A DNA stretch of 64,000 nucleotides from Phaeosaccion multiseriatum (lineage: Eukaryota; Protista; Ochrophyta, other classes): positions 1,612,001 to 1,676,000 of the forward strand of contig OZ218963.1 of assembly GCA_965112735.1 (NCBI GenBank), read 5' to 3'. Within the stretch, counting starts at the first letter, position 1. Each line of letters starts with the position of its first letter. Under the pieces are notes generated by a model. That model worked only from the letters and a program-made list of their open reading frames with translations, made no database searches and was not told where the DNA came from. This document shows positions 37,462-50,071 of the stretch, piece after piece. Made by a program: the position numbers and the translations under genes.

Positions 37462-39139
37462 ATGTCTCAAGGTGATTATCGAGTGGCCGACATCTCCCTT
37501 GCGGACTTCGGCCGCAGGGAGTGTGACATTGCCGAGCATGAGGTGAGGTACACAAAGGCAGGGAACAGAAAAATCCTTGGGTGGATCTTACGACGCAGAG
37601 CCGTTCAGATGCTGCTGCTGCCCCGCCCCGCTGTTGTTTGGCTCTGCCATTCTGCTTGCTGTTCCCTGGGAGGCCATATAATCTATTGATGAGCGTGTGT
37701 TGGAATGGGGCAGGGTTGGGGCAACCAACTCACACACGCTCTCCCCTCCTCTTCTTCCCTGCCCCTCCCGCTGCTATCCCCAGATGCCCGGGCTCATGGC
37801 GTGCCGCAAGGAGTACAAGGGTGTGCTTGCCGGCGCCCGTATTGCGGGATCCCTGCACATGACCATCCAGACTGCTGTCCTGATTGAAACGCTCAAGGAG
37901 CTCGGCGGAGACATGCGGTGGTGCTCGTGCAACATCTTCTCCACACAGGACCACGCCGCGGCTGCTATGGCTCGTGACGAGTCCGCCGCTGTGTTTGCGT
38001 GGAAGGGTGAGTCCCTGGAGGAGTACTGGGAGTGTACCCTCTCTGCCATCACATGGCCCACGGATGATGGCAAGGGTGACGGACCGGATCTGATTGTGGA
38101 CGACGGAGGTGACATGACCCTCCTCATTCACGAGGGATTCAAGGCCGAGAACGCCTACGAGAAGGACGGAACCCTTCCCGACCCTTCCAGCACAGACAAC
38201 GCTGAGTTCAAGCTGGTGCTGGAGATTATCAAGCGCGAGCTGCCGAAGAACCCCAAGAAGTGGCACCAGTTGGCCGCCCGATGCAAGGGGGTGTCCGAGG
38301 AGACCACCACTGGTGTGCACAGGCTGTATACCATGGAGAAGGAAGGATCGCTGCTCTTCCCCGCCATCAACGTCAACGACTCCGTGACCAAGTCCAAGTT
38401 CGACAACCTGTACGGCTGCAAGCACTCCCTGCCCGACGGCCTGTGCCGCGCAACCGATGTTATGATTGCAGGAAAGAGCACCGTCATTTGCGGTTACGGT
38501 GACGTCGGAAAGGGTTGCGCCCAGGCCATGAAGGCCGCGGGAGGCATTGTATACGTGACGGAGGTGGACCCCATTTGCGCCCTACAGGCAGCCATGGAGG
38601 GCTTCCGCGTGGTGCGCCTGGAGACGGTGGTGGGAATGGCCGACATTTTCATCACCACCACTGGCAACAAGGACATCATCAAGGCCTCCGACATGGAGAA
38701 GATGAAGAACAACGCCATTGTGGGCAACATTGGCCACTTCGACAACGAGATTGAGATGGAGAAGGTCATGGGTATGACCGAGCGCATCAACATCAAGCCC
38801 CAGGTGGACAAGTTTGTGTTCAAGGACGGACACGGCGTTATTGTGCTTGCGGAGGGCCGTCTGCTCAACTTGGGGTGCGCCACGGGCCACCCTTCCTTCG
38901 TCATGTCAAGCTCCTTCACCAACCAGACGCTCGCGCAGATTGAGCTCTGGAAGGAGAAGGACTCCGGAAAGTACGCCGTCGGAAAGGTGTACGTGCTGCC
39001 CAAGCTGCTGGATGAGAAGGTCGCCCGCCTGCACCTGGACGCCCTCGGAGTGGAGCTCACCGAGCTCTCCACGGACCAGGCAGACTACATTGGTGTCGCA
39101 CAGATTGGGCCCTTCAAGCCCGAGACGTACAGGTACTAG
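37462..39139 (+). CDS. SAHH: S-adenosyl-L-homocysteine hydrolase (form with the ~40-aa insert); exons 37462-37542 and 37784-39139
   Basis: [13 protein letters not shown]...E|[62 protein letters not shown]. Confidence 0.98.
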
Positions 39140-41594: not shown

Positions 41595-43253
41595 TCAAGC
41601 ATTGACTACGACATTGTCCAAGAGGGGGACATCATCATCGGGAGCATTGCTGCTGCTGCTGCTCCTGTCCTTTTCCATTTTCGGGGTGCTGCTACCGCTG
41701 CTATTACCGCTCCTAGTGCTGTGCAGAAGGTACATCTGAACGAGCACCGCAGCTGCCAACAGGGCCGTACAGATGCCAAACACTATGTGCTTCTTGACGC
41801 TCAGCTCCCAGTCGCTGCCGATGGGCCCTGTCAGCATGATGACCACAATCGTATTGAGCAGCACCCGAAACAAGTTCATCACTGTGCCGCGTGCGCTGTC
41901 CTCGATGTATCTGGATCTCATCGTGCCGATAGCCGGAAAGTACACGCCCACGCACCCCTCAAACACGAGCATGACCGCCATTATGAGGGCGGGCGTTTCG
42001 AAGCTGGCAACGAAGTACATGCACACCGTACTAACGAAGCCCACCCATAGCAGCACCTTCTCGGGGCTCATCCTCCACTTGTGGGGTAGTACCTCCGTCA
42101 GGAAGCCAAAGGCCGTGCTGCCGCCCATCACCGCGATCATAAAGCCCGTGAACACGTCGCCGTGATGAATGCTCACGGAGGGAAGTCCTCTGCTTGCGGC
42201 GTCTTGCTCGGCCGCTGCGTCCAGCACGGGCGTCCACATGACGACAAAGGTGAGCATCGCGCTCTCAAAGAAGGACTGGTAGAGACCAACGCACAGAGTC
42301 TTGGGGTTGGAGGCGATCTGCTTGCAGGCGAGACGGGTGTTGGCCAAGGCGTCACGCAGTGCAGTACCGACACCTCCACTGCTGCTGCTGCCTGTCTGTC
42401 GGGTACCGTAGTTCTCCGTCCACATCAGCATGAGCAGCCCTGCTACGACCACGCCCATTGCCGCTGACAAGTCGAATGGGGCCTGGATGCCCCAGCCCTT
42501 GTCCACCCCCATGCCCGATAAATGGCCGGCGCCCACAGCTACCAACCCCATACCCTGCACGTATTGGCTGAAAGTTCTTCCCAGCAGAGCCGAGGGGAAG
42601 CCTCTGCTGTGGTGCTCGTCCACCATCCAGCACTCGTAGGACGTGGCAAAAAGGGCGTACGCCACTCCGGAAATTGCCCGCCCCAGAAACAAAACGCGGT
42701 AGCTCCCTGACCGAAGCATGAGGCACTGCAGAACGTGCAGGAAGCAGGACGCCAGGCAGCCTTTGCGCCGCCCGAACTTGTCCACAGCCGCACCGATGCA
42801 CATGCTGGCCACCCCGGCAGACACGAAGCCGGCGGTGAACAGCAGTCCAATGTCCGTAATCTCAAAACCCTTCACTGAGTATAGCTCATAGAGGTACGGC
42901 CCCATCATGAAGTCTGCGAGCGTCGCTAACAGATGCACGAGAAGGTAGACATTGCGAAAGCGCAAGAAGGCCTTTGGAGCGGCAGAGACGGCATCAACCG
43001 CACTGCTGCTGCCGACGGTGTCCGACTTCGATAGTGGGGAGTGTCCCAGGCCCACGAACAGACTGGAGCCGAAGTAAATCGAGGCCGTGAGGATAGCCGT
43101 CACAAAGACGGACAGCTCCACAGCTCCAAGCTCACCTCCTTCTCCATCGCCCTTAAAAGTCGAGAACGTGAACACCGCAGTGACTGCCGTCCAACCCCCC
43201 AGGCTACGTAACACTGACCGCCTGCTGCCCCCCTCTCCTTCGGCCTGCGACAT
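41595..43253 (-). CDS. MFS transporter of the MFSD5/MOT2 (molybdate-anion transporter) family
   Basis: FRNVYLLVHLLATLADFMMGPYLYELY, DKFGRRKGC, GRAISGVA...SYECWMVDEH, FEGCVGVYFPAIGTMRSRYI...RGTVMNLFRV. The start (MSQAEG) is uncertain; the ORF is open to 43559. Confidence 0.9.
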   Translation of the reverse strand: MSQAEGEGGSRRSVLRSLGGWTAVTAVFTFSTFKGDGEGGELGAVELSVFVTAILTASIYFGSSLFVGLGHSPLSKSDTVGSSSAVDAVSAAPKAFLRFRNVYLLVHLLATLADFMMGPYLYELYSVKGFEITDIGLLFTAGFVSAGVASMCIGAAVDKFGRRKGCLASCFLHVLQCLMLRSGSYRVLFLGRAISGVAYALFATSYECWMVDEHHSRGFPSALLGRTFSQYVQGMGLVAVGAGHLSGMGVDKGWGIQAPFDLSAAMGVVVAGLLMLMWTENYGTRQTGSSSSGGVGTALRDALANTRLACKQIASNPKTLCVGLYQSFFESAMLTFVVMWTPVLDAAAEQDAASRGLPSVSIHHGDVFTGFMIAVMGGSTAFGFLTEVLPHKWRMSPEKVLLWVGFVSTVCMYFVASFETPALIMAVMLVFEGCVGVYFPAIGTMRSRYIEDSARGTVMNLFRVLLNTIVVIMLTGPIGSDWELSVKKHIVFGICTALLAAAVLVQMYLLHSTRSGNSSGSSTPKMEKDRSSSSSNAPDDDVPLLDNVVVNA

Positions 43254-43752
43254 CTCCTCCGACTTGTGCTGTGGTGGCGAGCAAGGAGGGAGGATTTGGA
43301 GGGGTATGGAGGGGCATGCAGAGGGGCGAGGATTGATTAGTGCTCTGGGCGTTATTTTAGGGAGAACCATCCTCCAAAAAAGCCGGAGAAGATACCGCAT
43401 ATGCATATAAGATACCGCAAATATACCAGACCGAGAAGCACAGATCCTAGCACAAGTCTCTTCCACACCTGTTATTCTTGCCTCACTGTCTTGGCCCTGC
43501 CGGTTCCGAGCACAGCAGAAAAAGAGAAAAACAGGCAAAATTTCAGCACGTCCTGACACTTGTACAAAACGGGAGGTGGAGAAGATTAAAAATCGAGTTC
43601 CCGTTTTCGGCTCCAGACTGGCCTAGTAGAAGCCTAAGCTCTAGGCCCTAGGCCGAGCGGCCTACGCCCGCTCTAGGCCGGCCGTTTTTTCTCCCTAGGC
43701 CGGCGGTTCTAGGCCTAGGCCTCGACGATCGACGACGACCTAGCTAGCTAGT

Positions 43753-43913
43753 CAGCGGGGCGGGCCGGGGCAGCAGCAGCATCTGAACGGCTCTGCGTCG
43801 TAAGATCCACCCAAGGATTTTTCTGTTCCCTGCCTTTGTGTACCTCACCTCATGCTCGGCAATGTCACACTCCCTGCGGCCGAAGTCCGCAAGGGAGATG
43901 TCGGCCACTCGAT
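43753..43913 (-). pseudogene. Captured SAHH fragment (part of exon 1, 5' splice site and part of intron 1)
   Basis: 43766-43913 is the exact reverse complement of 37478-37625 (148 bp); similarity extends to 43753 with a 5-nt insertion. Confidence 0.95.
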
Positions 43914-44560
43914 GACGACCTATCTGTCGGCCCCAGCCATCCACGCCTAGCGGTTTTGCTCTAGGCCGCTAAGCCGCTCGGCCTTCGGCCAATCTAGGCC
44001 TAGGCCGGCGGCCTCCGGCCGCTCTAGGCCGCTCACTTCTCAGTCCTAGGCGGCCTATATAGCCCGCCTCTAGGCAGCCTCCCAGTGACCGTGGGCGCGT
44101 GCGTGGTGCCGAACAGCCAGTGGGTAGCAGCACATCTGTAGGTCTGCACTCCTCGTAGGGCCAGCGAGGCGGAAGAGACAACACGAACCAAGCCTACTCC
44201 ACTTCCAATCCCATGCGACTACTCTTTGCACTCTGGGCACTCCCATTCACCCACTAAGTTGGCTGGTGTCTGCCCTAGGCCGCGCGGGCCTCCGGCCCGC
44301 CTAGGCCGCCTAGGCGGCGGCATATAAATACGCCGAGGGCCTACGGCCCTCGCTAGGCCGGGCAATTTTCCCAAATAGGCCTAGGCCGCTAGGCCGCTAG
44401 GCGTGCATGGGGCTGATATCTGATCAGTAATTACGGCCGGCGCAGGCGGCCTGATTACTGATTATGACCGGCGCCAGCCGGTCTGAGTACTGATTATGCG
44501 CCAGCCGGGGGCTGATTACTGATTACGGCCGGCGCACACCGTAATCTTGTCCAGGGTCGA

Positions 44561-44866
44561 AGGGAGGGAGGGAGGGAGGGAGGGAGGGAGGGAGGGAGGG
44601 AGGGAGGGAGGGAAGGAGGGCGGGAGGGAGGGAGGGAGGGAGGGAGGGAGGGAGGGAGGGAGGGAGGGAGGGAGGGAGGGAGGGAGGGAGGGAGGGAGGG
44701 AGGGAGGGAGGGAGGGAGGGAGGGAGGGAGGGAGGGAGGGAGGGAGGGAGGGAGGGAGGGAGGGAGGGAGGGAGGGAGGGAGGGAGGGAGGGAGGGAGGG
44801 AGGGAGGGAGGGAGGGAGGGAGGGAGGGAGGGAGGGAGGGAGGGAGGGAGGGAGGGAGGGAGGGAG
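44561..44866. repeat. (GGGA)n tract (~306 bp) bracketed by two MITE TIRs
   Basis: Starts immediately after atcttgtccagggtcga (44544-44560) and ends immediately before tcgaccctggacaagat (44867-44883). Confidence 0.95.
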
Positions 44867-45020
44867 TCGACCCTGGACAAGATCATCTGATTCTGATTAC
44901 GACCGGCGCCAGCCGGTCTGGTTGCTTACAGCCGGTGACCAGCCGGCCTGATTACTGATTTTGGCCGGGGGCTGATTACTGGTTGCGGCCGGCGCACACC
45001 GTAATCTTGTCCAGGGTCGA
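44867..45020. mobile_element. MITE nested in the Pack element (a 5'-degenerate sister copy lies at ~44403-44560)
   Basis: 17-bp TIR tcgaccctggacaagat / atcttgtccagggtcga; internal ctgattactgatt and gccggcgccagccgg motifs shared with 49778-50071; no TSD visible. Confidence 0.85.
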
Positions 45021-45158
45021 TAGGCCTAGGCCGCTGCCGGGGGGGCTGCGCCAAAAATAGGCCTAGGCCGGGGACCTGCGGCCCCCTCTAGGCCGGCCGA
45101 ATTTCGTCTCTAGGCCTAGCTGGGCTTCTGGCTAGGCCAGTCTGGAGCCGACCGTTTG

Positions 45159-45714: not shown

Positions 45715-45870
45715 ACAGTATTAGGGGTCCAACGTTTCGGTAGCACCAATCCTCCGGTATGAAGGTGTAGGACTCACCGAGCGCACCTTTTGTTACGATA
45801 AAGGCATCCCAATATGCCTTCATTTTTTTTTTCAGACTGAAGGCATAATGGGATGCCTTATATCGTAACA
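45715..45870. mobile_element. Truncated, diverged, inverted copy of the 46385-46609 element
   Basis: Aligns to the reverse complement of ~46385-46552, retains the internal hairpin (45791-45870) and ends in tatcgtaaca. Confidence 0.8.
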
Positions 45871-46384: not shown

Positions 46385-46609
46385 TGTTACGATATAAGAC
46401 ATCTCAATATGCCTTCAGTATTATCCGAACGTTTGGATAATACTGAAGGCATATTGGGATGCCTTATATCGTAACAAAAGGTGGGTTCCTTGAGCCCTAC
46501 ACCTTCGCACCGGGGGGTTGGCGCTACCGACACGTTCGTCCCTAAATACTGTATTTTCCAAACGTTCGGATAATACTGAAGGCATATTGAGATGTCTTAT
46601 ATCGTAACA
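46385..46609. mobile_element. 225-bp MITE with TGT...ACA ends, 53-bp perfect TIR and 5-bp TSD (Ginger-like termini)
   Basis: TIR 46385-46437 versus 46557-46609; TSD gttgt at 46380-46384 and 46610-46614; a third internal TIR-like copy forms a 92-bp hairpin at 46385-46476. Confidence 0.88.
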
Positions 46610-49777: not shown

Positions 49778-50071
49778 TCGGCCCTGGAAGAGGTTATCAG
49801 ATTACTGATTACGGCCGGCGCAGCCGGCCTGATTACTGATTACTGCCGGCGCCAGCCGGCCTGATTACTGATTATGGCGCCAGCCGGGCCTGATTACTGA
49901 TTATGGCCGGCGCCAGCCGGGTCTGATTACTGATTACTGATTATGACCGGCGCCAGCCGGCCTGATTACTGATTATGACGGGCGCTAGCCGGCCTGATTA
50001 CTTATTATTGGCGCCAGCCGGCCTGATTACTGATTATGACCGGCGCACACTGTAACCTCTTCCAGGGCCGA
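49778..50071. mobile_element. 294-bp MITE with 19-bp TIR and 6-bp TSD
   Basis: TIR tcggccctggaagaggtta / taacctcttccagggccga; TSD gcacgc at 49772-49777 and 50072-50077; internal ~30-bp tandem units ctgattactgattatgaccggcgccagccggc. Confidence 0.92.

Follow-up and report, generated by a model that had tools for sequence, protein, structure and literature searches.

A piece of the neighbouring SAHH gene within a nested miniature transposon of the alga Phaeosaccion multiseriatum, probably copied there during break repair

The stretch of DNA analysed here, called the window, covers 64,000 nucleotides of the ochrophyte Phaeosaccion multiseriatum (assembly GCA_965112735.1, contig OZ218963.1, positions 1,612,001 to 1,676,000 of the forward strand). 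It holds an SAHH gene, a transporter gene on the opposite strand and a stack of miniature transposons nested within one another, which contains an inverted piece of the SAHH gene. The features discussed below are the following, in window coordinates:

37462..37542, plus strand: exon 1 of SAHH (AdoHcyase), 27 codons, ending GAG/GTGAGG; Pfam PF05221 positions 1-23, E 5e-5
37478..37636, plus strand: copied donor stretch, 65 nt of exon 1 and 94 nt of intron 1, exact over 37478-37625; single-copy apart from the insert
37781..39139 (start approximate), plus strand: exon 2 of SAHH, the rest of the gene, within the open frame 37697-39139
41595..43256, minus strand: MFS_5-type transporter gene, Pfam PF05631, E 9e-63; about 350 nt separate its start codon from element B, on the left side of the latter
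43601..43606, no strand: left TSD of element B, CCGTTT; the same hexamer stands at 45153-45158
43607..45152, no strand: element B, a non-autonomous TIR element (TCGGCTCCAGACTGGCCTAG ... CTAGGCCAGTCTGGAGCCGA), host of the copy
43722..45020, no strand: C-type MITE remnant (TCGACC ... GGGTCGA) with a (GGGA)n array, nested in B, TAGGCC on both flanks
43727..43752, no strand: left junction filler GATCGACGACGACCTAGCTAGCTAGT, tandem GAC and (CTAG)3, near-palindromic
43753..43913, minus strand (SAHH sense): SAHH-derived insert, exact over 43766-43913
43914..43919, no strand: right junction filler GACGAC, read from the sequence
43927..44416, no strand: MITE A (TCGGCCCCAGCC ... GGGGCTGA; TIR start also written TCGGCCCC), TSD TATCTG at 43921-43926 and 44417-44422

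Judging by its domains, the donor is an intact two-exon SAHH gene, predicted to encode an AdoHcyase and an NAD-binding domain. The exons were searched separately against Pfam rather than as a joined coding sequence; the open frame that holds exon 2 matches positions 23-299 of AdoHcyase (PF05221, E 1e-126) as well as AdoHcyase_NAD (PF00670, E 6e-78), and the intron measures about 240 nt. Copying in the reverse direction, from the element into SAHH, is ruled out: siblings of the element have no such piece, and the conserved N-terminus of the protein comes from exon 1. Elsewhere in the genome, on contig 13, lies a divergent multi-exon AdoHcyase-like gene, about 10 kb from the sole Piwi/Argonaute gene detected (the two loci being G000:C13:406411-409160 and C13:419594-420865).

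Local alignment bears out the inverted identity reported in the first-pass annotation, with the same coordinates: window positions 43766-43913 repeat 37478-37625 exactly in inverted orientation, 148 nt with 0 mismatches, a length of exact match that excludes chance. A repeat search of the window places the inverted arms at 37470-37631 and 43760-43921 (162 nt, 98% complementary); when a 5-nt insertion (CCGGG) is allowed in the copy, the match can be followed by eye through CAGCGGGGCGGG to 43753 in the copy and 37636 in the donor, and the SAHH match then amounts to 161 nt with one indel. The copied stretch comprises 65 nt of exon 1 (37478-37542), the GAG/GTGAGG donor site and 83-94 nt of intron 1; both the donor site and the 83 nt of intron noted earlier can be read in it. 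Since the intron is present, the template was DNA, or at least unspliced sequence, as had been proposed. The copy lacks the SAHH start codon (37462-37464), coding nucleotides 1 to 16 and everything upstream, and the piece has no TIRs of its own. In the assembly (67.1 Mb, 22 contigs), queried with the copy and with 500 nt around the donor, the copy and SAHH are the sole two occurrences. Donor and copy lie 6.1 kb apart on the same contig, which agrees with the local origin suggested at first.

That the piece sits within a transposon is equally upheld by the TIR element around it. The TIRs of element B are 20 nt long and 100% complementary (TCGGCTCCAGACTGGCCTAG), and their 179 matches in the genome correspond to about 90 copies; most of the 20 complete copies are bordered by perfect 6-bp TSDs, the hexamer differing from copy to copy. 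At TAGGCC, most other B copies hold an inner C-type element, and one 222-bp copy (L088) is B without C, with a single TAGGCC at the site; the B+C composite has, on this pattern, multiplied as a unit. MITE A, a member of another family whose candidate copies number in the hundreds, represents an independent nested insertion, for which siblings of B supply the empty site, CTATCTGATTAG. The TSDs of MITE A are 6 or 7 bp long (loci L006, L010 and L012 versus L007, L011 and the window copy at 43921-44422), and those of B are 6 bp throughout the sample. All three elements, B, C and A, fit the MITE pattern of TIRs, many copies and TSDs varying between copies.

The sole long B TIR pair, 6.4 kb on C9 (G000:C9:215018-221463), was considered as an autonomous partner; no transposase was found in it, and what it holds instead looks like a nested gag-protease retroelement. 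Its gag-protease-like frame (L040:1-1233, minus strand), which has no Pfam match and rules it out for that role, spans 411 codons and includes two recognisable motifs, a CCHC zinc knuckle and a protease-like DSG. Further features of these repeats were recorded in passing. Within the window, positions 44544-45020 hold a (GGGA)n array of about 310 nt between perfect 17-nt inverted repeats (ATCTTGTCCAGGGTCGA / TCGACCCTGGACAAGAT), the motif standing again at 45004-45020; such an array occurs, at variable length, in most family-B copies. An intact C-type MITE (TCGGCCCTGGAAGAGG ... CCTCTTCCAGGGCCGA), with GCACGC on both flanks, is found at 49778-50071; beside this intact form, the C copy inside B retains little of its left TIR. 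A small repeat family with hairpin-like ends (TGTTACGATATAAGGCATCCCAATATGCCTTCAG / CTGAAGGCATATTGGGATGCCTTATATCGTAACA) occurs three times in 800 nt, at 45790-45870, 46385-46476 and 46551-46609. Two B copies lying 22 kb apart on C9 (L083, G000:C9:3268558-3269738, and L084, C9:3246244-3247712) have identical flanks and the same TSD, CACTGT, and measure 1181 and 1469 bp, a pattern suggesting that a segment was duplicated and that the internal repeat arrays changed afterwards.

The abundance of sibling copies makes the state before the insertion legible. In 20 distinct copies of B the site is uninterrupted and reads CTAGGCCTAGGCC TCGAC CTATCTGATTAGTAATTACGG (also written CTAGGCCTAGGCC-TCGACCTATCTGATTA or ...GGCC-TCGACCTATCTGATTA), and the six siblings closest to the window copy, 95-96% identical to it, are all uninterrupted at the break point. 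In the window, TCGAC is followed by 193 extra nucleotides, then by CTATCTG, MITE A and a second TATCTG. Measured against the 20 uninterrupted siblings, the window thus carries a simple 193-nt insertion, made up of 26 nt of left filler, the 161-nt SAHH piece and the 6 nt GACGAC; this empty state is read from sibling copies in one assembly rather than from an allele at the 43753-43913 locus. Counted from the left ends of C and MITE A, the break point, TCGAC / CTATCTG, is 5 and 7 nt away, respectively. No template for the left filler GATCGACGACGACCTAGCTAGCTAGT was found elsewhere in the window or in the genome, where it is unique. The hexamer GACCTA, present once in the reference, occurs in the window at both 43737-43742 and 43917-43922, a pair that self-templated synthesis could also yield, and the pentamer CTCGA is found at the boundary of the donor (CACTCGAT) and again at the break (GCCTCGAC). 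An inverted duplication arising by staggered-break inversion is ruled out, because SAHH runs through 37631 without a break and the two flanks of the copy adjoin each other in the siblings.

An all-against-all comparison of the 20 complete B copies left unexplained internal DNA in two of them only, the window copy and L045. In the window copy this DNA is accounted for by the body of MITE A together with the SAHH piece; the odd segment of L045 proved to be a different repeat, for which the genome has over 200 candidate copies. Eight larger B copies (1.7-2.2 kb) are wholly repeat in the parts covered. With non-repeat cargo in 0 of the 28 family-B copies inspected (20 complete, 8 partial), the window copy aside, the SAHH insertion is a one-off event and not family cargo. 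The idea of a family that carries gene cargo, raised in the first-pass annotation, thus falls with the repeat-only content of these copies and with the 20 siblings uninterrupted at the insertion point. Length variation within family B thus comes from microsatellite and repeat modules together with nested elements.

The piece is also young. Compared with the consensus of its closest siblings, the window B/C copy has accumulated 7 private substitutions over 260 compared positions (2.7%); a piece as old as its host would be expected to show about 4 changes in 148 nt, and none is observed (Poisson P about 0.02 for equal age). The contrast between 0 of 148 in the SAHH piece and 2.7% in the host indicates an insertion younger than the host copy, in agreement with the recent origin first assigned to it.

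These observations are probably best explained by a single recent templated insertion, or filler DNA, made during the repair of a double-strand break. What the assembly itself shows is an insertion with a unique donor, the unbroken site in siblings, the sequence at either junction and the relative youth of the piece. In the proposed course of events, a double-strand break would have occurred within the nested non-autonomous transposon, between TCGAC and CTATCTG; a broken end would then have copied 161 nt of SAHH, 6.1 kb away and in inverted orientation, across the boundary between exon 1 and intron 1, and the ends would have been joined by short self-templated additions, the GAC repeats and (CTAG)3. 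The pathway may have been SDSA or alternative end joining with a template switch; both it and the cause of the break are deduced from the sequence. The locus combines the traits by which filler is recognised, namely an otherwise contiguous reference that is interrupted, an intact template elsewhere, a piece without transposon ends of its own and extra nucleotides at the junctions, and the unique left junction, the CTCGA common to donor and break site and the 6-bp TSDs of the family point the same way. In a survey of rice, filler of 1-123 bp was found at 58 of 94 DNA-transposon excisions and attributed to SDSA (Roffler & Wicker 2015, PMC4423477). Against a filler origin, 161 nt exceeds the fillers of that survey, neither junction is explained by clean microhomology, and CTCGA stands on the wrong side for simple priming. 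As for the source of the break, a GACCTA pair is what excision of an element with 6-bp TSDs would leave, which suggests that another member of this 6-bp-duplicating superfamily may have excised, leaving GACCTA on both sides; this excision footprint is put forward tentatively and is somewhat doubtful, as the pair may stem from self-templated synthesis instead of a former TSD.

A gene piece within a TIR element raises the question as to whether the transposon itself captured it, as the first-pass annotation had it. The enclosure stands; the capture as such is put in doubt by junctions that resemble break repair and not transposase-mediated pick-up. A nascent Pack-type transposon, in which the fragment was acquired through the biology of transposition and can now move, would be the counterpart of the plant Pack-MULE and Pack-CACTA elements (PMC8903248, PMC6379663). 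The likeness is real: a non-autonomous element whose 20-nt TIRs are intact and whose 6-bp TSD is perfect encloses part of a host gene together with intron sequence, and comparable repair accidents are thought to be the origin of Pack-type elements. This reading is nevertheless unlikely, given that the SAHH fragment occurs in one copy genome-wide with no evidence of movement after capture, and that the other family members inspected hold no gene DNA. The superfamily, with its 6-7 bp TSDs, also differs in being neither Mutator nor CACTA. The Pack-CACTA model of neighbouring insertions with complementary deletion (Catoni et al., PMC6379663) fits poorly with a donor that is 6 kb off and inverted, and is rejected because both ends of B have one TSD.

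Two further alternatives call the DNA template or the assembly into question. A chimeric read or mis-join could have placed SAHH sequence into the repeat: the stack is dense, it adjoins a (GGGA)n array of 310 nt that is hard to assemble, and a metagenome scan with the SAHH exon/intron junction gave no independent match. Such an artefact is very unlikely, as the insert is short and internal to an otherwise colinear element sequence and has specific filler at both junctions and a 5-nt indel, whereas chimeras usually show one junction and long foreign tails. Equally, repair could have been templated by unspliced SAHH pre-mRNA instead of DNA; SAHH is usually highly expressed, the intron is retained and the piece falls wholly within the transcribed region. 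This is the least probable of the origins considered, and hardly credible in view of the lack of poly(A) or a transcript end in the piece. A donor as close as 6 kb on the same chromosome is, moreover, expected of DNA-templated repair but not of RNA templating.

The nature of the donor gene had prompted the proposal of a regulatory or protective device. In Arabidopsis, SAHH1/HOG1 is required in methylation-dependent silencing. The inverted SAHH scrap, transcribed from the stack, might accordingly give rise to antisense RNA or siRNA and, by way of Argonaute, feed back on SAHH, lowering it and weakening methylation-based silencing; or the sequence shared with an essential gene might guard the element against silencing. 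If true, transposon activity would be coupled to the methylation capacity of the cell. The genome does encode an Argonaute/Piwi protein and at least one weak C5-methyltransferase-like frame, and an siRNA conflict between donor genes and transposable elements has been published for captured fragments in maize (review PMC13317346), which speaks for the idea and also means that it is not in itself new. Both forms of it are highly improbable here. The copy is solitary and young, shows no trace of selection, and has only 65 exonic nt, no ATG and no identified promoter; the piece has no inverted partner inside the element for dsRNA, and the family is not prone to carry genes. Nor does any gene on the plus strand, which for the piece is antisense to SAHH, read into it: the end of SAHH lies at about 39.2 kb, and the neighbouring transporter gene is on the minus strand. 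The SAHH piece is best described as a non-coding gene scrap in which nothing was found to point to a function, and the insertion is a single event and probably a neutral one, which by itself is no proof of regulation of SAHH or of silencing. With most of SAHH and the transporter gene between its arms, the 148-nt perfect inverted repeat could in principle give rise to an inversion disrupting SAHH.

In comparison with known systems, the templated insertion favoured here comes close to the filler DNA of plants (PMC4423477): in both, mending a break brings in a copy of genomic DNA from elsewhere, the donor stays intact, the junctions are messy, and there is a tie to TIR transposons and retained target duplications. 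The differences are that the present case concerns a stramenopile alga, that its 161 nt contrast with the 1-123 nt of the rice survey, that the break lies inside another transposon and that the empty state comes from siblings and not from the orthologous locus. Polymerase-theta and MMBIR templated insertions (PMC7165422, PMC8421209) share with it the short tandem or palindromic additions that echo the flanks and a template switch in cis; TMEJ, however, typically inserts a few to tens of nucleotides taken from within a few hundred, and 161 nt copied from 6.1 kb away resembles SDSA on an ectopic template more closely. A search for literature on transduplication in stramenopiles found no relevant paper, which does not prove that there is none. 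Filler DNA at sites of excision or break repair is also said to have been described in earlier work on maize and tobacco.

The kind of event, a templated repair insertion giving a potential proto-Pack element, is thus known; the lineage is unusual, and the state before the event is unusually clear. Dozens of sibling copies supply that state exactly, so that both junctions can be read base by base. The locus would offer a clean natural case of break repair copying a nearby gene piece into a transposon, outside the land plants in which filler and Pack-type events have mostly been described, with the raw material for gene-carrying transposons on view.
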